64,000 bases of DNA from the sequence record KT919973.1; one strand, 5' to 3'. Of the stretch, positions 15,094 through 43,502 are shown piece by piece. The notes below the pieces were generated by a model. The model had not been told where the DNA came from and did not search any database. It saw nothing but the letters and a program-made list of their open reading frames with translations. Both the position numbers and the translations under genes were made by a program. Numbering within the stretch: position 1 is the first letter of the stretch; each line of letters begins with the position of its first letter.

Positions 15094-15114
15094 GGTCTTC
15101 TAAATATGAAGACC
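15094..15114 (+). promoter_or_regulatory. Late promoter variant TCTAAATA inside a 7-bp inverted repeat
   Basis: GGTCTTC-TAAATAT-GAAGACC; TCTAAATA at 15099-15106, 33 nt before the next ATG. Confidence 0.55.
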
Positions 15115-22988: not shown

Positions 22989-23630
22989 ATGGAATTACAA
23001 CTCTTAATTGAAGACTGGGGTTTATCTAGCGGTTGCGCTGATAGCTTCGGTGAAAAGCCTCTTGTTGAAGCGAAAATGCCCACGGAAAAGGGCGGTGACT
23101 TGTACATCGAAGGTATTTTCATGCAATCGAATGTCGTAAACCGTAATGGTCGTCGATACCCGAAAAAAGTCATGGAAAATGCTGTATCTAAATACATGAA
23201 AGAACAAGTCAACACGAATCAAGCGTTGGGCGAGCTTAATCACCCAAGTCGTTCAAACGTTGACCCCGCTGAAGCTGCGATTCGAATTACTGAGTTGTGG
23301 TGGGACGGCGATAACGTAATGGGTAAAGCTATCGTACTAAATACACCGAAGGGACAAATAGTTCGAGGTCTGATCGAAGGTGGTTGGGTACCGGGCGTGA
23401 GTTCAAGAGGTCTTGGTTCAGTTAAGCAAGTTGACGGCATCAACGAAGTGCAAGATTTCCGTCTTACAGTAGGCGTTGATGTAGTGTGGGGTCCTAGTGC
23501 ACCTGCTGCTTACGTTAAACCAGTAACTGAGTCAAATGAAGCTGCTAAGTCAGTAAAAACAGAAGAAATTACAGAAAGTAATGACGCTGAATTTGCGAAA
23601 CTAGCGGAAACGTTAAAAACTCTCTTATAA
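22989..23630 (+). CDS. 21: Prohead protease gp21
   Basis: LYIEGIFMQ..VVNRNGRRYP, ALGELNHP, GVSSRGLGS, DVVWGPSAP. Confidence 0.95.
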   Translation: MELQLLIEDWGLSSGCADSFGEKPLVEAKMPTEKGGDLYIEGIFMQSNVVNRNGRRYPKKVMENAVSKYMKEQVNTNQALGELNHPSRSNVDPAEAAIRITELWWDGDNVMGKAIVLNTPKGQIVRGLIEGGWVPGVSSRGLGSVKQVDGINEVQDFRLTVGVDVVWGPSAPAAYVKPVTESNEAAKSVKTEEITESNDAEFAKLAETLKTLL

Positions 23631-30545: not shown

Positions 30546-31139
30546 TTACCTCGTTGCTGCGTTTGTAATATTGCGAATCATACGAATTGCGTATTCAGTA
30601 TCGCCAGTCATAGCCGATGACGCTGCTTTATCGACGTAAAATGTGCTATCTTCAATCATGTTCAAGTGATGGTAAATCTCACGAAAATCATGACGGTCGT
30701 ATTCTTTCACATTAAAACGAAACGCACCTGCCTTCTTATCTTCGTCATGAACACGCTTGTATTCATCTACGACACGAATCATTTCGGTTGCGTATTTCTT
30801 CATTTCCATGTTATCAAGCTTTAAACGCTTTGCAGCTTTCATTACTTCGTCACGAGGACGTTCAAGCTCGATTACGTCTTTAAGAACATTCAGACTGTGA
30901 ATTGTGTTCACTGCTGCACGCTCCATTCTTAGCTTATGGTCTTCTAGTGACTTATTGTGCTTTCTAAGTTCACCCGATGCTGTCGCACTCGCGATCAAAC
31001 CTGCAAACACACCCCAGAAGCCACCTTTGCGCTGCATACGCTTTTTAACTTCACCTTTCGAACCCGATGTTGCTGCTTTAAATTGAGCCCATCTACCGGT
31101 TTGTTTAGCTTTGTCCATTTCTGTTAAAAATTCTATCAT
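30546..31139 (-). CDS. Putative internal head protein (helical, one hydrophobic segment)
   Basis: First gene after late promoter; N-terminus MIEFLTE resembles the EFIAE capsid-targeting signal; GGFWGVFAGLIA segment. Confidence 0.55.
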   Translation of the reverse strand: MIEFLTEMDKAKQTGRWAQFKAATSGSKGEVKKRMQRKGGFWGVFAGLIASATASGELRKHNKSLEDHKLRMERAAVNTIHSLNVLKDVIELERPRDEVMKAAKRLKLDNMEMKKYATEMIRVVDEYKRVHDEDKKAGAFRFNVKEYDRHDFREIYHHLNMIEDSTFYVDKAASSAMTGDTEYAIRMIRNITNAATR

Positions 31140-31161
31140 TGTTAACCCCTTTGTTTACTAT

Positions 31162-31169
31162 TATTTAGA
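31162..31169 (-). promoter_or_regulatory. Late promoter variant
   Basis: TCTAAATA on the minus strand, 22 nt before the ATG at 31139, right after a terminator. Confidence 0.7.
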
Positions 31170-31177
31170 CGCAAACG

Positions 31178-31205
31178 AAAAAAGGGCGACCGAAGTCACC
31201 CTTTT
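31178..31205 (-). terminator. Rho-independent terminator
   Basis: AAAAGGGTGAC-TTCG-GTCGCCCTTTTTT on the minus strand. Confidence 0.88.
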
Positions 31206-31217
31206 AAATTGGTTAAT

Positions 31218-31844
31218 TTAACCGTATACTGATTTGATATTGTCGAAAAACGCAGTTGAACCGTGTAGTTTCGCTACAACATACGATGCATTCTGACGAA
31301 CAAGTTGTTTAACGTTCAGTTCTTTCAACTGCTCTTTTGACAAGTTCGCGCTATGTACAAGCGTAAGAATAGAACGTGCGTGATCTGACAATGCAAGCGT
31401 TGAAATATAACGAGCTTGCTGTTTCGGTTCAAGCTTTTTAAATGCATCAACCGCTTGTGGACCCGCAACAGCTACTGCACGCCCCAGACCAAGATTGAGA
31501 ACACGTGTCAATAGAGATTCCATCCCTAATACAGGCTTACGTGGCGACTCGCGTTTTGGCATGAGTACTTCTAATTTACCGTCACCTTTCAACGTGTATA
31601 CAGGAATCTCGGTGTGACCGAACGTTTCGAATCGAGTGACCATGATTTCAGGTGCATTCTGAACGTTAGCTTGAACACGACGACGAAGACGCTCATCATA
31701 TTCACCGCCATTAAGTGAATATACAATCTCTGCAACTGTCAAGTCACGCTTTTCAAGCAATTGAATTACTGCTTTGCGGAAGTTACGACGCTTAGGTGAC
31801 TCGTTAGTTGCAAGTGCTTTACGTACGATGTCTAAATCTTTCAT
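31218..31844 (-). CDS. Hypothetical protein with N-terminal winged-HTH-like segment
   Basis: RKAVIQLLEKRDLTVAEIVYSL pattern; early operon; GAGAG SD. Confidence 0.5.
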   Translation of the reverse strand: MKDLDIVRKALATNESPKRRNFRKAVIQLLEKRDLTVAEIVYSLNGGEYDERLRRRVQANVQNAPEIMVTRFETFGHTEIPVYTLKGDGKLEVLMPKRESPRKPVLGMESLLTRVLNLGLGRAVAVAGPQAVDAFKKLEPKQQARYISTLALSDHARSILTLVHSANLSKEQLKELNVKQLVRQNASYVVAKLHGSTAFFDNIKSVYG

Positions 31845-31859
31845 AATATATTTCTCTCA

Positions 31860-32126
31860 TTAAATTACGATTGGCTCTTGAATAGCCATGAATGTCTTGC
31901 CAGTGAATTCTTGATATGCTTCATGAAAGCTGTCAAGTTCATCGTCAACAATTATTTTTTCACCAGTACCAAATGAATATAAAATACTGTCATATTTACC
32001 TGTTGCAGTATTAAACATCGGTTCAGTTGTGAATTTAACGCCACACGGTGTATAAAACTCCCTAGGTTTTTCAACAGGAACTTGTACAGCGTTATGTTCA
32101 GCAAAAGCTGTTTCGAGTTTGTTCAT
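31860..32126 (-). CDS. Hypothetical protein (88 aa)
   Basis: First gene after the early promoter; GAGAG SD. Confidence 0.65.
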   Translation of the reverse strand: MNKLETAFAEHNAVQVPVEKPREFYTPCGVKFTTEPMFNTATGKYDSILYSFGTGEKIIVDDELDSFHEAYQEFTGKTFMAIQEPIVI

Positions 32127-32163: not shown

Positions 32164-32192
32164 ATAATAAGCAAAAACATTTGAGTTGTCAA
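32164..32192 (-). promoter_or_regulatory. Early sigma70-type promoter
   Basis: TTGACA-N17-TATTAT on the minus strand. Confidence 0.8.
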
Positions 32193-32681
32193 CTACTTTC
32201 TTCGCCATCTCTCAAGTTTTTCATCATATTCGCTATGCTTCCATAAGTCGAATACGATTGTACCTCTCTGAAACCACCAGACCAATGAAATAGTATCATT
32301 TAACTTAGGGTCTTTTGGGTTTTTTCCTGAATAAAATTCACTACTAGGGTGTGAGTGATAAATCGACTTTTTAACTGCGAACTTATACCCACCTTCAGGT
32401 TTACCGACTTCTTCTGGCGGGTATAAGTTACCTAGATACGCAACTTGATATACAGTGTTCTTGAATACGATTCGACTTGAATCAATATTGAAGAGCAAGT
32501 TCTGGTATTGAGCAGCATTCGCAGCAATCTTCCACGGGTGCTTCGGTTTCGTTTCTAGTAACTCATCGATTTTCGGCTCAGGGATTAGTTTGGCTAGGTT
32601 ATGATTACCCCACCCCTCTTCAAGTGATAAACTCAGTTCGATACCGTAAAGCGTGTTTTCATATTCATTAAATCGTAACAT
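32193..32681 (-). CDS. HigB/RelE-superfamily-like protein with N-terminal capsid-targeting-like propeptide
   Basis: KLIPEPKIDELLETKPKH, LGNLYP and WWFQRGTIVFDLWKHSEYDEK segments parallel HigB-family N-terminal, LxxxFP and THxEYD motifs; preceded by MLRFNEY...LEE. Confidence 0.55.
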   Translation of the reverse strand: MLRFNEYENTLYGIELSLSLEEGWGNHNLAKLIPEPKIDELLETKPKHPWKIAANAAQYQNLLFNIDSSRIVFKNTVYQVAYLGNLYPPEEVGKPEGGYKFAVKKSIYHSHPSSEFYSGKNPKDPKLNDTISLVWWFQRGTIVFDLWKHSEYDEKLERWRRK

Positions 32682-32684
32682 AAA

Positions 32685-33197
32685 TTACCTCAGATAAATG
32701 AAGCTGTTCGAAAGACGGTCGTGAACTAAAAGATGACCATTTCGCTTAACCCAATATTCAATCGTCTTCAATTCGTGAGAGTCGCGTCGACCTATATTCC
32801 AATCATGAATCACATCATGCGCAACTGGCTGATATAGCTCATCACCACGGCGATAAGTAGGCATCCATTTAGGCTTGAATTCGTCCTTGATTACTAATGT
32901 TACGTTTTCATCACCTAAAGGGGCATTAGCAGAAACACCTTCTAATTCTTTCTTAACGTCGTCTGAAAGCTCTTTGACTACAATCGCGTCCGATTCATCG
33001 ACTGATTCACAGCGCGTCTCAGACTCGATTACAGAGCATTCTAGTGGTAGTTCTTTAACCTCGCGTAGCTCGTGTGTGAATAACTCGTCGATCATCTTGC
33101 TTTTAGTCAGCGATTTATCAAGTTCGATGTCGTAGTACTCTTTTGCAAATTCTGCAACTACGCGCTTGGTTTGTTTCTTTAGATATTCTTTAATCAT
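32685..33197 (-). CDS. Inh paralogue
   Basis: EFAKEYYDIELDK shared with inh (EFAKEYYGIELDR); C-terminus IEYWVKRNGHLLVHDRLSNSFIYLR aligns with inh C-terminus. Confidence 0.75.
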   Translation of the reverse strand: MIKEYLKKQTKRVVAEFAKEYYDIELDKSLTKSKMIDELFTHELREVKELPLECSVIESETRCESVDESDAIVVKELSDDVKKELEGVSANAPLGDENVTLVIKDEFKPKWMPTYRRGDELYQPVAHDVIHDWNIGRRDSHELKTIEYWVKRNGHLLVHDRLSNSFIYLR

Positions 33198-33206
33198 AGT
33201 TTTACC

Positions 33207-33416
33207 TTAGCATTCAATTGTTACCCACACATTTCGATTTAAATCGAAAAATGTAAGTTCATTATCTGCACCGTTTTCATTTTTACGTTGTTCTTCTCGA
33301 TTGCAATCAAGATGTGGTAGATAATGCTTGCATAAAGTCGCGTGATATTTCTTGCCTTTATGCTCAAACTTAAAGCAACCATCTTTCATCTTGTAAAACA
33401 TTTCGTCTCTTGTCAT
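33207..33416 (-). CDS. Small hypothetical protein, possibly SH3/WYL_2 (DUF2693)-like
   Basis: MTRDEM..K..G, ATL...LP, FFDLNRNVW pattern; first gene after a late promoter. Confidence 0.45.
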   Translation of the reverse strand: MTRDEMFYKMKDGCFKFEHKGKKYHATLCKHYLPHLDCNREEQRKNENGADNELTFFDLNRNVWVTIEC

Positions 33417-33429
33417 GAATTTAGACCTC

Positions 33430-33455
33430 TATAAATACAGTTATACATATTTAGA
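33430..33455. promoter_or_regulatory. Divergent late promoters
   Basis: TATAAATA (+) 33430-37 and TCTAAATA (-) 33455-48. Confidence 0.75.
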
Positions 33456-33478: not shown

Positions 33479-34015
33479 ATGAGACATTTTGTGTATGAAA
33501 TACGACATACAAAAACAAATCGAATATACGTCGGTATACACTCATGTGATTGTGAATTCTTAGATACAAATTATTTCGGTTCTGGGATACATATCAAAAA
33601 TGCAATACGCAAGCATGGGAAGAGTGAATTCACTAGACGTGTGATAGCAGAATTTGACAACCGAGAAGACGCAGCAAATTTAGAGGCTGAGATCGTCACG
33701 CGAGAGTTTTGTGAACGTGATGATAGTTACAACATCAGAACTGGTGGCGATACGTGTTTTGAACATAGCAGCAAAACACGTGAGGTGATGTCCAAATCAC
33801 AATCAGGTGATAAGAATCACTTCTACGGGAAGACACACACTGCCGAAGCAAAGAATAAAATAGGCAAAAAGAATTCGATTAAATTAAAAGGGCGCGAGTT
33901 AGAAGCAAATAAATTGACCGCAACATGCCCACATTGTAATAAAACCGCACAACTCGCCAATATGAAGCGTTGGCATTTTGATAACTGCAAACACAGAGAA
34001 ATTAATGATGAGTGA
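33479..34015 (+). mobile_element. Free-standing Seg-type GIY-YIG homing endonuclease
   Basis: FVYEI...IYVGIH, YFGSG, E and YNI.TGG catalytic motifs; NUMOD3-like repeats; CPHC...RWHFDNC tail; same position as T4 segE, before uvsW. Confidence 0.88.
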
Positions 34016-42700: not shown

Positions 42701-43502
42701 GTGGTACAGAAATTGCAATTTTCTTAACTGAACCGTCATATGTGACTGTCTCGCCAACGTTAGTGAAATAACCACCAGTTGATAAGTACCCACCCTGTTG
42801 AGTTGGGTGACTGTCGTCGATATACGTATTGTATAACTCTTGATTGATCTGATATGTCCATGCAATACCGTTGTACACTAAGAATATAGTGCTGTTAGGG
42901 GTATTGAATGAAATACTCGGTTTAGACTCAATTGAACCGTCAATGCCGTAATGTTGAATCGTCAAGCCGCCCGCTGCTGCAATCGTACAAGGGTAAGTTG
43001 TAAGAACGCCTTTACCGTCTTTGATTGTAACTGTGTCACCTGTTAATGGTGTTTCAGGCAGTGTAATAGTGATTGCCGAGCTTGCTGTTAACAACAAGAA
43101 GTCACCGACGTTTGCGCCTACCGATGAATCAGTATCTTCCCATTCAGGGTCGGTACGCATTTTCTGCCACTTCTGCGAGTCAAAAGGTTCAGGTGCATTG
43201 ATTTCGGTAATGTTTTTGTATAGACGTTGATTGAACTCAACGATAAAGTCTACTTTATAGTGATCTCGTGTTGGGTCATACTCTTGAACAGTGTTCTCTT
43301 CAATAAAGTAGCCTTGGTTAATACCGTCGAACAATTCATTTGCTCGTGGGTCTGCTACGTTAATGACATTCTGACCACTTGCATCAAGACCTGACGCACG
43401 AAATGCTCTGCGGAATTCTGACATTTCATTGCTCCTTTGTTTAGATATGCAATTCGCTATGATATATTTAGACACACGATATAAACATATAGGAAACGAC
43501 AC
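39717..43502 (-). CDS. 34: Long tail fibre proximal subunit gp34
   Basis: FRASGLDASGQNVINVAD, ENTVQEYDPTR N-terminus; many ATETRRGVxEIATQxE repeats; start probably at a later Met (MSEFRR). Confidence 0.9.
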   Translation of the reverse strand: MSFPICLYRVSKYIIANCISKQRSNEMSEFRRAFRASGLDASGQNVINVADPRANELFDGINQGYFIEENTVQEYDPTRDHYKVDFIVEFNQRLYKNITEINAPEPFDSQKWQKMRTDPEWEDTDSSVGANVGDFLLLTASSAITITLPETPLTGDTVTIKDGKGVLTTYPCTIAAAGGLTIQHYGIDGSIESKPSISFNTPNSTIFLVYNGIAWTYQINQELYNTYIDDSHPTQQGGYLSTGGYFTNVGETVTYDGSVKKIAISVPLNPNVGDTIHLKDVAYLENQTSIQIGVNPTATGQVIQDPISGERSSVISLDTIGGADITFIDDNGTGVWVITIANNPHLWNYVGDSSAVELKPRSRYAIEIADAVPAMTITLPEKPADGDWIEISHNKTAHKKVTIQVHPNFGDDDPGHGPDEYKVFLDFETYRYQKYRHYVDFVPFFVESFEISDYDSGYSLVLYYDASRKVWSFGNIATRIDIADELYRKRPGIVPLADPTEALAHGIEYAHPEDAADPWADQNPLKDHVITVETLDARRAGEQQVGMARVATLGTDEALEESRSGTFVRYPDTNFRHDLFITPRSLNARTATETRRGVVEIATQNETRSTTNDVQVLTPMKFHAAQAEEDLTGVAKLVEASNNINAGGIVTSTANMRSDRSVNGLDNTVYDKTDHLRIVTPKMLDEYRATENQPGTLWVAKSSELRINDSTVDNAIITPKKLAAWKASSTVRGIARSATQSEANATTGTGESWTTVFITPETLNSRTATESRRGVAEIATQTEVDSGTDDTRIVSPLKLKTWLDRDHFVTAGTDGLSHTGTVWGDVTFSIASATETQRGTLQVATQLEANAQAGALDDVIITPQKLNARRATETQTGIVRLATQAEVEAATASNEIVVTPSDLLHWTRYSDSSRANESRYGNVQIATPAETFVGNSTDGSTQAYTSYLRVPYAVSPYGLHYALRNYLPLNAKADDSELLDGLNSTQFARRDIDQTINGTYTFSGEFVQTKGGGYFLVANPTNDAASVKLDWFNDEPRIRVGGSGNGSSSPFSIAGTGDTTRWQVNSTGYTTQPGGASFGDTIYENEATANVDTTYGSYSSPSSGSLRQKYLGINNVAKASEKWVTARTVTFTGDLSGNFTLDGSGNVTTNIQVNDYSHAHSGENITTGTINNDRLRKSSRTNQGIVQVTSDVRTADPVNASDPHQALSAGAGKTLSERIDLFTPDGGTGESVKYRDYIQVGSVRMSTNNQGVLEFTYGHAI
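43439..43472. promoter_or_regulatory. Overlapping divergent promoters for rnh (+) and gene 34 (late, -)
   Basis: GTTTAG-N18-TATATT (+, 43439-68); TCTAAATA (-, 43472-65). Confidence 0.55.

Follow-up and report, generated by a model that had tools for sequence, protein, structure and literature searches.

A predicted RelE/ParE-fold protein behind a putative capsid-targeting leader in the KVP40-like Vibrio phage phi-ST2

Described systems and the phi-ST2 gene

The gene considered here is a hypothetical open reading frame (ORF) of Vibrio phage phi-ST2, called the target below, and the described systems closest to it are the internal proteins (IPs) of phage T4 and the toxins of the RelE/ParE superfamily. 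The cargo of T4-type capsid-targeting sequences (CTS) characterised so far comprises three inhibitors of GmrSD and the ADP-ribosyltransferase Alt (PMC12373910). According to mutations in T4, targeting depends on residues 4 and 7 and processing on residues 8 and 10, and the propeptides are 10-19 residues long (PMC9026906). In the T4 record, ipII and ipIII start with MKTYQEFIAE/A and ipI with MKTFKEF...ITE/A, the slash marking the cut site here and below. On the toxin side, the roles assigned to residues of YafQ are as follows: (i) H87 is the general acid; (ii) D67 is its tuning partner; (iii) H50 and H63 are bases; (iv) F91 stacks on the nucleotide (PMC4652777). T4 also encodes RegB, basic and 153 aa long, which adopts a RelE/YoeB-like fold, has one extra helix at the N-terminus and uses two His residues in catalysis (PMC3014915). 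The PBECR domains (Barnase/EndoU/ColicinE5-D/RelE-like) of MuF-fusion and polyvalent proteins are RelE-related ribonuclease (RNase) folds which are predicted to be packed into virions and injected (PMC5512222). The target appears to combine elements of these systems, as structure models indicate that its body very probably has the RelE/ParE fold, and its N-terminal sequence suggests that it is probably packaged through a CTS.

The target resembles T4 IPI-III and Alt at its N-terminus, where the pattern M-x-x-[FY]-x-E-[FY] precedes an [LI]-x-E cut site that lies, as in IPI, about 20 residues in and not at residue 10. Further points in common with the T4 internal proteins are a small basic mature product, a non-core lineage-specific gene, and a phage that possesses a gp21 protease and a T4-like scaffold. 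The cargo is different, since the target is modelled with a RelE/ParE fold and IPI-III are small GmrSD inhibitors unrelated to it, and Alt is an ADP-ribosyltransferase. The leader also differs by Leu instead of Lys at position 2 and Tyr instead of Phe at position 7, and the packaging of the target is a prediction from its sequence. RegB shares with it the phage origin, a basic chain of about 150 aa, the fold, the additional N-terminal helix, two key His residues and the absence of an antitoxin; in contrast to the target, RegB is early, cytoplasmic and devoid of a CTS, and is found in coliphage-type T4 relatives. The PBECR domains give only a weak structural match to the target and differ in that they are delivered as MuF, portal or giant polyvalent fusions and not by a T4 CTS, and in the layout of the active site, with a His on the N-terminal helix plus Thr/Ser at the C-terminus.

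The window (the whole analysed stretch of 64,000 nucleotides, in which all positions are counted unless stated otherwise) is identical at 100% to phi-ST2, its base 1 being base 124001 of record KT919973.1. This phage is a KVP40-like Schizotequatrovirus, and KVP40-like vibriophages are used in aquaculture phage therapy. The target is annotated as hypothetical protein phiST2_0238, its ortholog is KVP40.0375, and it falls in PHROG 16269, which has no assigned function. The family is narrow: tblastn located members in 51 Vibrio phage records, eight clusters came from a word-indexed search of 5.8 billion proteins, and three real clusters, all from KVP40-like phages, from an exhaustive hidden Markov model search of 1.84 billion representatives. 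The remaining matches of the exhaustive search (e.g. P0011 and P0012) were rejected as false, being due to repetitive sequence. Even the remotest members, 34-47% identical, occupy the same genomic position. An alignment of 11 family sequences with identity down to 34% was used for conservation, and the residues invariant in it are W50, N75, H109, S110, N121, P122, D129, W135, H149, E151 and Y152.

Predicted fold and candidate active site

An earlier reading of this DNA, made from the sequence alone, had called the target an orphan HigB-like toxin and named structure prediction with a Foldseek comparison as a check; the fold predicted here is RelE-like. In the AlphaFold model of the whole protein (predicted local distance difference test, pLDDT, 75) residues 1-20 are disordered and the order of the secondary structure elements is already RelE-like, while the model of residues 45-162 alone reaches pLDDT 91.9 with a predicted template modelling (TM) score of 0.84. 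A VIA wide search, a structural comparison independent of Foldseek, was run with this domain model against 48,161 PDB representatives, and toxins of the RelE/ParE superfamily fill all of its first 26 rows. The matches include Staphylococcus aureus YoeB (Z 8.7, with 84 of 88 residues aligned), Helicobacter pylori HP0894 (Z 8.4), Escherichia coli YafQ and YoeB (Z 8.0 each), archaeal and E. coli RelE (Z 7.4-7.6), Streptococcus pneumoniae HigB (Z 7.1), ParE proteins (Z 6.2-6.6), V. cholerae HigB2 (Z 6.1), Cami1 (Z 5.8), P. vulgaris HigB (Z 5.7), E. coli HigB (Z 5.6) and MqsR (Z 4.5); unrelated rows score Z 4.3 or less, and the ranking is unchanged with the whole-protein model. With Foldseek, the top PDB match of the domain model is V. 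cholerae YafQ (probability 1.00, TM 0.54/0.67), the ribosome-bound Cami1 RelE domain and HP0894 come next, and among the Swiss-Prot models RelE2 and RelE1 rank first; the whole-protein model gives weak E-values only. A feature search of the ESM Atlas yielded no usable lead for the target. On these models the assignment of the fold is solid, and that of the HigB subfamily is not.

The HigB-like label has accordingly to be divided. The superfamily fold stands, as does the C-terminal H-x-E-Y-D signature of E. coli-type HigB, but membership in HigB does not: PF09907 gives no match to the target (nor to any part of the phage record), YoeB, YafQ and RelE outscore all HigB proteins structurally, R68 is not conserved, and there is no HigA. 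The strings quoted for the target in the sequence-only reading are correct (a leader of 22 aa closing L20-E21-E22, then G23, KLIPEPKIDELLETKPKH, YLGNLYP and SLVWWFQRGTIVFDLWKHSEYDEK), and the E. coli HigB segments given beside them agree with higB (b3083) of strain MG1655. The N-terminal register proposed between the two, with K31 and the following residues on HigB from L3 onwards, is about 17 residues off, as the structural alignments begin the RelE-like domain at residues 45-50. The lack of the usual Arg, also pointed out at that stage, is real, for in a profile-profile alignment the invariant R68 of HigB falls on D129, invariant in the target family. Features shared with HigB and its relative SehA are the last hairpin, the H-x-E-Y-D motif and the C-terminal helix, and SehA needs H88 and Y91 of this region for toxicity. 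On the other side, the target lies below every Pfam threshold, D49 and N65 of HigB have no clear counterparts in it, and E. coli HigB scores lower than YoeB or YafQ.

At the level of sequence, the last 33 residues of the target (final hairpin, H149-S-E-Y-D and C-terminal helix) align with residues 69-101 of HigB at hhalign E 6e-4 to 9e-4, and the motif itself aligns with H88-x-E-Y91-D of HigB and SehA (H88-K-E-Y-D in E. coli HigB). The hhalign score of 26.3 compares with a mean of 12.1 (standard deviation 2.3, maximum 21.4) in 200 column shuffles. The similarity to HigB is above chance for this C-terminal block only, and it is the sole sequence-level signal; pairwise BLASTP of the target against HigB is not significant (E 0.75).

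The similarity to YafQ, YoeB and RelE extends over nearly the whole toxin chain (Z 7.5-8.7) without significant sequence similarity. In structural alignment, residues 1-84 of YoeB pair with model positions 4-106 and residues 3-92 of YafQ with positions 3-110, and because these alignments reach the ends of the toxin chains, YoeB H83 and YafQ H87 come to lie at about model position 105, which is H149. H50, H63, D67, H87 and F91 are invariant in the YafQ family alignment built in this analysis. The target offers a comparable set, namely a His on strand 2, an Asp 20 residues before the His of the sheet/helix junction (the spacing D129-H149 equals that of D67-H87), and an aromatic residue just after the latter. 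A greedy hhalign run places H111 on H50, D129 on D67 and H149 on H87, although not significantly (E 0.16-0.2), and H111 is replaced by Lys in one distant ortholog (phage D479). The absence of the Arg agrees with a site of YafQ type (His/Asp/His) and does not by itself indicate inactivity, since YafQ has its invariant D67 at the head of the same strand. Differences from the three toxins are the absence of an antitoxin gene and of the RelE/YoeB Arg, the size, about 50% larger through an insert of 24 residues, an extension at the N-terminus and a C-terminal helix of greater length, and the location in a lytic phage behind a propeptide.

One member of the family also bears another name. UniRef lists the ortholog of phage nt-1 (VPFG_00038) as a 'JAB domain-containing protein', and a JAB/MPN metalloprotease could be read from the string H-S-H-P-S followed by Asp residues, with H109-S-H111 as a zinc-binding H-x-H. 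This identity was tried and rejected, and it is almost certainly wrong: none of 10 family members matches Pfam JAB even at E 10, four fold searches returned no JAB/MPN structure, the H-x-H varies (the second His being Lys in the D479 ortholog), and the order of secondary structure elements is RelE-like. The UniRef name looks like an annotation error that could spread, and the present assignment corrects this misleading public-database label.

Leader, gene neighbourhood and transcription

The capsid-targeting propeptide named in the sequence-only reading is supported in silico, as the N-terminus resembles the T4 CTS and is followed by an invariant site of the gp21 type, [LI]-x-E. The target starts M-L-R-F-N-E-Y and continues to L20-E21-E22/G23, which fits the T4 pattern, and F4 and E6 are conserved in the family. 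The most distant ortholog, from D479, starts MKTFSEF and continues to L-D-E/A; P0009, truncated by the gene caller, has the corrected start M-I-V-F-N-E-M and continues to I-C-E/D-W. With this start corrected, all 11 members have [LI]-x-E with x-W/Y directly behind it; further [LI]-x-E strings occur in the target at residues 35, 40 and 43 and are unconserved or stand before Pro. Searched as DNA, the pattern M-x-x-[FY]-x-E-[FY] has six matches in the 250-kb genome, each of them at a gene start, and none in the reversed control; about 0.18 such starts would be expected by chance among some 412 genes (Poisson p = 4e-8). The predicted mature protein has an isoelectric point (pI) of 9.3, those of the T4 internal proteins being 8.9-9.5. 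Besides the protease expected to remove the leader, the phage possesses a T4-type scaffold (T4_CASP, E 5e-71), and the L-x-E cut site of its major capsid protein (gp23) is conserved, GLNE/A aligning with FLTE/A of T4.

Outside the window, five more phi-ST2 genes have a CTS-like start: phiST2_0070, 0312, 0328, 0344 and 0182, at positions 32744 (+), 206898 (+), 217176 (+), 226953 (+) and 101936 (-) of KT919973.1, respectively. The starts of phiST2_0312, 0328 and 0182 read MK[TQ][FY]xEF[LI]xE, i.e. with [LI]-x-E at residues 8-10, and that of phiST2_0344 reads MKQFNEFYQE, with Tyr at position 8 and L-D-E at residues 13-15. The gene phiST2_0182 (101694-101936 of the record, minus strand) is annotated from an internal start; upstream of that start the ORF can be extended by 34 codons to MKTFDEFITE, a textbook CTS, and the gene belongs to the tRNA cluster, which is also the place of ipI in T4. 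As to the products, phiST2_0328 matches a PHROG named ParB C-terminal domain, phiST2_0344 is very acidic (112 Asp and Glu residues in 483 aa), and phiST2_0070, 0312 and 0182 have no assigned function. On the basis of their starts, the five genes form a candidate set of injected proteins.

The target is indeed an orphan, in keeping with the sequence-only reading: no neighbouring gene resembles an antitoxin, and no XRE-type HigA lies beside it, the upstream gene being a paralog of Inh and the downstream one encoding a protein of 88 aa, neither of them with an XRE or helix-turn-helix (HTH) domain. The downstream protein has no Pfam match and no HTH or ribbon-helix-helix domain. The Inh paralog stands directly upstream of the target in every genome examined, the remotest included, with a gap of 2-4 nucleotides (nt). 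As no more than 3 nt lie between the upstream stop and the ATG of the target in phi-ST2, translational coupling of the two genes is likely. They form the end of a probable unit of three genes in the order 69-aa ORF, Inh paralog, target. In T4, inh and hoc face segE and uvsW; in phi-ST2, the Inh paralog is the positional counterpart of T4 inh and the target is in the hoc slot, between head genes and uvsW. The strict linkage to the Inh paralog in all phages examined and the location in the inh-hoc slot would also suit a head-assembly accessory without action on the host, working with the Inh paralog in the prohead, for instance by modulating gp21 or scaffold removal. Such a role is very unlikely, since a toxin fold with conserved His/Asp/His/Tyr has no obvious part in assembly, and the family occurs in KVP40-like phages only, whereas genes for head assembly belong to the core of T4-like phages. 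As a side observation, the three genes 3' of the target (30546-32126, minus strand; 88, 208 and 197 aa) have no Pfam match and no CTS-like start.

A motif of late-promoter type, TCTAAATA, lies 31 nt upstream of the first ATG of the unit, and KVP40 has the same motif in the same position. Within the window, the genes encoding fibritin, tail sheath, tail tube, scaffold, major capsid protein, Inh and proximal tail fibre each have T[AC]TAAATA upstream at a distance of 15-41 nt, and because it precedes structural genes the motif behaves like a late promoter of phi-ST2. The promoter noticed earlier right after the stop codon of the target is present, with 11 of 12 matches. Sites of sigma-70 type also occur further upstream of the operon, so that its transcription need not be purely late.

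The upstream sigma-70-like promoters are among the points that would fit an unpackaged protein whose resemblance to a CTS is coincidental or vestigial and which acts in the producing cell as an mRNA endonuclease that would re-set gene expression, a functional analogue of T4 RegB directed at phage and host mRNA. The target is close to RegB in size and charge and likewise carries additional N-terminal helices, the phi-ST2 record yielded no regB homolog, and the leader of the target is the least canonical of the six CTS-like starts. This explanation is nevertheless unlikely: F4, E6, an aromatic residue at position 7 and [LI]-x-E-x-W are conserved family-wide, with a textbook MKTFSEF in the remotest ortholog; the Inh paralog, the head-gene neighbourhood and the late-type motif fit a head protein and not an early regulator; and sequence similarity to RegB is lacking (hhalign E 0.13).

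Regarding the late motif itself, TCTAAATA occurs 10 times in the window and the canonical TATAAATA six times. The copies of the former are on both strands, e.g. at 15099, 20200, 27339 and 55046 (+) and at 43472, 33455 and 31169 (-), and seven of the 10 lie 15-40 nt upstream of an ORF start, including those of the tail tube, Inh and proximal tail fibre genes. The 197-aa gene downstream of the target has its own TCTAAATA 22 nt upstream. From its sequence and placement, TCTAAATA appears to be a second late-promoter form of KVP40-like phages.

Table 1. Positions in the window of the target, its parts and the associated genes and signals
Feature	Position	Strand	Description
Target ORF	32193..32681	-	162 aa + TAG; ATG 32679-32681, TAG 32193-32195
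Leader, residues 1-22	32616..32681	-	Acidic (pI 4.2), modelled disordered; F4, E6, Y7; L20-E21-E22; predicted gp21 cut after E22
Conserved N-terminal extension, residues 23-44	32550..32615	-	Two short helices; W24, E35-P36, I38-D39, L41; outside the RelE-like domain
Predicted RelE/ParE-superfamily domain, residues 45-162	32196..32549	-	Topology beta-alpha-alpha-beta4-alpha; conserved insert of ~24 residues between helix 2 and strand 2
H109-S110-H111 codons	32349..32357	-	On or just after strand 2; candidate general-base position; H109 invariant
D129 codon	32295..32297	-	Invariant; head of long strand; aligns with HigB R68 and YafQ D67
H149-S-E151-Y152-D153 codons	32223..32237	-	Junction of sheet and C-terminal helix; H149, E151, Y152 invariant
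Shine-Dalgarno GAGG	32688..32691	-	Within the end of the upstream ORF
Upstream gene, Inh paralog	32685..33197	-	170 aa; 28% identity to the phage's Inh prohead-protease inhibitor, E 1e-13; phrog_8608
First gene of probable three-gene unit	33207..33416	-	69 aa, no assigned function
Late-promoter-type motif TCTAAATA	33448..33455	-	Upstream of ATG at 33416
Sigma-70-type promoter TTGACA-17-TATTAT	32164..32192	-	One base past the target stop; serves the next gene, 31860-32126
gp21-type prohead protease	22989..23630	+	Peptidase_S77, E 2e-98; expected leader-removing enzyme

Proposed role, and further genes near the operon

The explanation tentatively favoured, whose chances we put slightly below even, is that the target is a packaged, gp21-processed and injected endoribonuclease of RelE fold with a YafQ-like His/Asp/His site. 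It is drawn in silico from the fold, the conservation of motifs, the CTS-like pattern with its genome-wide enrichment, and synteny; packaging, cleavage, injection and RNase activity are deduced from these. The gene would be transcribed late together with the Inh paralog, and the acidic leader of 22 residues (M-x-x-F-x-E-Y ... L-E-E) would dock the protein on the scaffolding core of the prohead. The gp21-type protease would then cut after E22 and leave a basic protein of about 16 kDa in the head, which would enter the next host cell with the phage DNA. There it would most likely cut host mRNA as an endoribonuclease that needs no metal, doing so on the ribosome, like RelE, YafQ and YoeB, or with a ribosomal partner, like T4 RegB. 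In the proposed site, H109 or H111 would serve as the base and H149, tuned by D129, as the acid, and Y152 would position the nucleotide. This scheme would have no need of an antitoxin, since synthesis would take place late, in a cell already doomed, and proheads would sequester the product.

Several observations weigh against this proposal. As regards the toxin body and its catalysis, (i) curated toxin families in Pfam, NCBIfam and PADLOC, including PF05016, PF05015, PF09907 and PF15738, give no match to the target at E up to 10; (ii) a PDB sequence search with two profiles returned chance matches only (e.g. YciE and a urokinase kringle) and no toxin family; (iii) the YafQ family profile does not match the target significantly (E 0.2), so the mapping of residues between the two rests on topology and spacing; (iv) the sheet contains no invariant Arg or Lys, and the Arg of RelE, YoeB and HigB is Asp here; (v) with its 24-residue insert and 22-residue N-terminal extension, the target exceeds by about 50% the size of the toxins that fit the ribosomal A site; and (vi) in Salmonella SehA the H88/Y91 helix motif is essential, yet this protein blocks RNase III and cuts no RNA (PMC12817084). 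As regards packaging, the leader departs from the canonical MK[TQS][FY]xEF of the phage by L2, Y7 and the lack of [LI]-x-E at residues 8-10, most orthologs have Glu behind E22 where the T4 sites compared have Ala, a literature search found no virion proteome of any Schizotequatrovirus, and no expression data were found, a single public run of unspecified type containing the locus. The sigma-70-like sites upstream of the operon belong to the same list. The chances that the target is a catalytic RNase are regarded as evenly balanced.

The points concerning catalysis bear on another explanation, in which the target is packaged and injected but not catalytic, its RelE-fold body serving for binding. 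Through the H-x-E-Y helix it might block a host defence protein or an RNase, as SehA blocks RNase III; it might also poison gyrase like ParE, or act as a decoy at the ribosomal or antitoxin site against abortive-infection toxins of the RelE/HigB type. The only sequence-level signal leads to the HigB/SehA helix motif, whose H88 and Y91 are essential in a protein that is not an RNase, the replacement of the catalytic Arg by Asp and the want of an invariant basic residue in the sheet fit a binder, ParE toxins are also matched (Z 6.4-6.6), and the T4 internal proteins characterised so far, three in number, all inhibit defence nucleases stoichiometrically and are not enzymes (PMC12373910). Set against this, the target has two His, one Asp and one Tyr, all invariant, at catalytic positions of YafQ and YoeB, and the RNase members score higher structurally than ParE; a decoy that sequesters antitoxins would, moreover, free host toxins and harm the phage. 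A binding role of this kind is regarded as a serious, though less likely, alternative.

If the favoured explanation of an injected endoribonuclease is carried further, a lytic phage may have taken a ribosome-dependent RNase of toxin-antitoxin type, dropped the antitoxin and added a T4 propeptide, so that host mRNA would be cut within seconds of DNA entry and before phage gene expression, with sequestration in the prohead, and possibly the Inh paralog, as a substitute for the antitoxin. This full scenario is possible but doubtful. A T4-type leader combined with a stand-alone RelE/YafQ/HigB-like body, with an Inh paralog as partner, was not found described in the literature. Cargo of RelE fold would, if true, constitute a new class for the T4 capsid-targeting route, and an injected RNase the first enzymatic RNase among T4-type internal proteins, a defence-type toxin being reused as a phage weapon; the internal proteins of phages would thereby be tied to toxin-antitoxin biology. 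The target is thus a candidate for an immediate, transcription-independent host shut-off or for counter-defence in the widespread KVP40-like vibriophages, and the approximately six CTS-bearing genes of phi-ST2 provide a ready list of probable injected proteins.

Between the operon and uvsW lies a further ORF (33479-34015, plus strand, 178 aa), unannotated in KT919973, which encodes a SegE-like homing endonuclease of GIY-YIG/NUMOD3 type. It overlaps the listed start of uvsW and is preceded by TATAAATA at 33430. The ORF is absent from KVP40, in which only 64 nt separate uvsW from the operon, and megablast coverage suggests that only phi-ST2 and XZ1 carry it. In one metagenomic relative (L013:1-2189, minus strand), the uvsW product of 852 aa has LAGLIDADG/Hom_end matches, which suggests an intein or a homing-endonuclease insertion in that gene.

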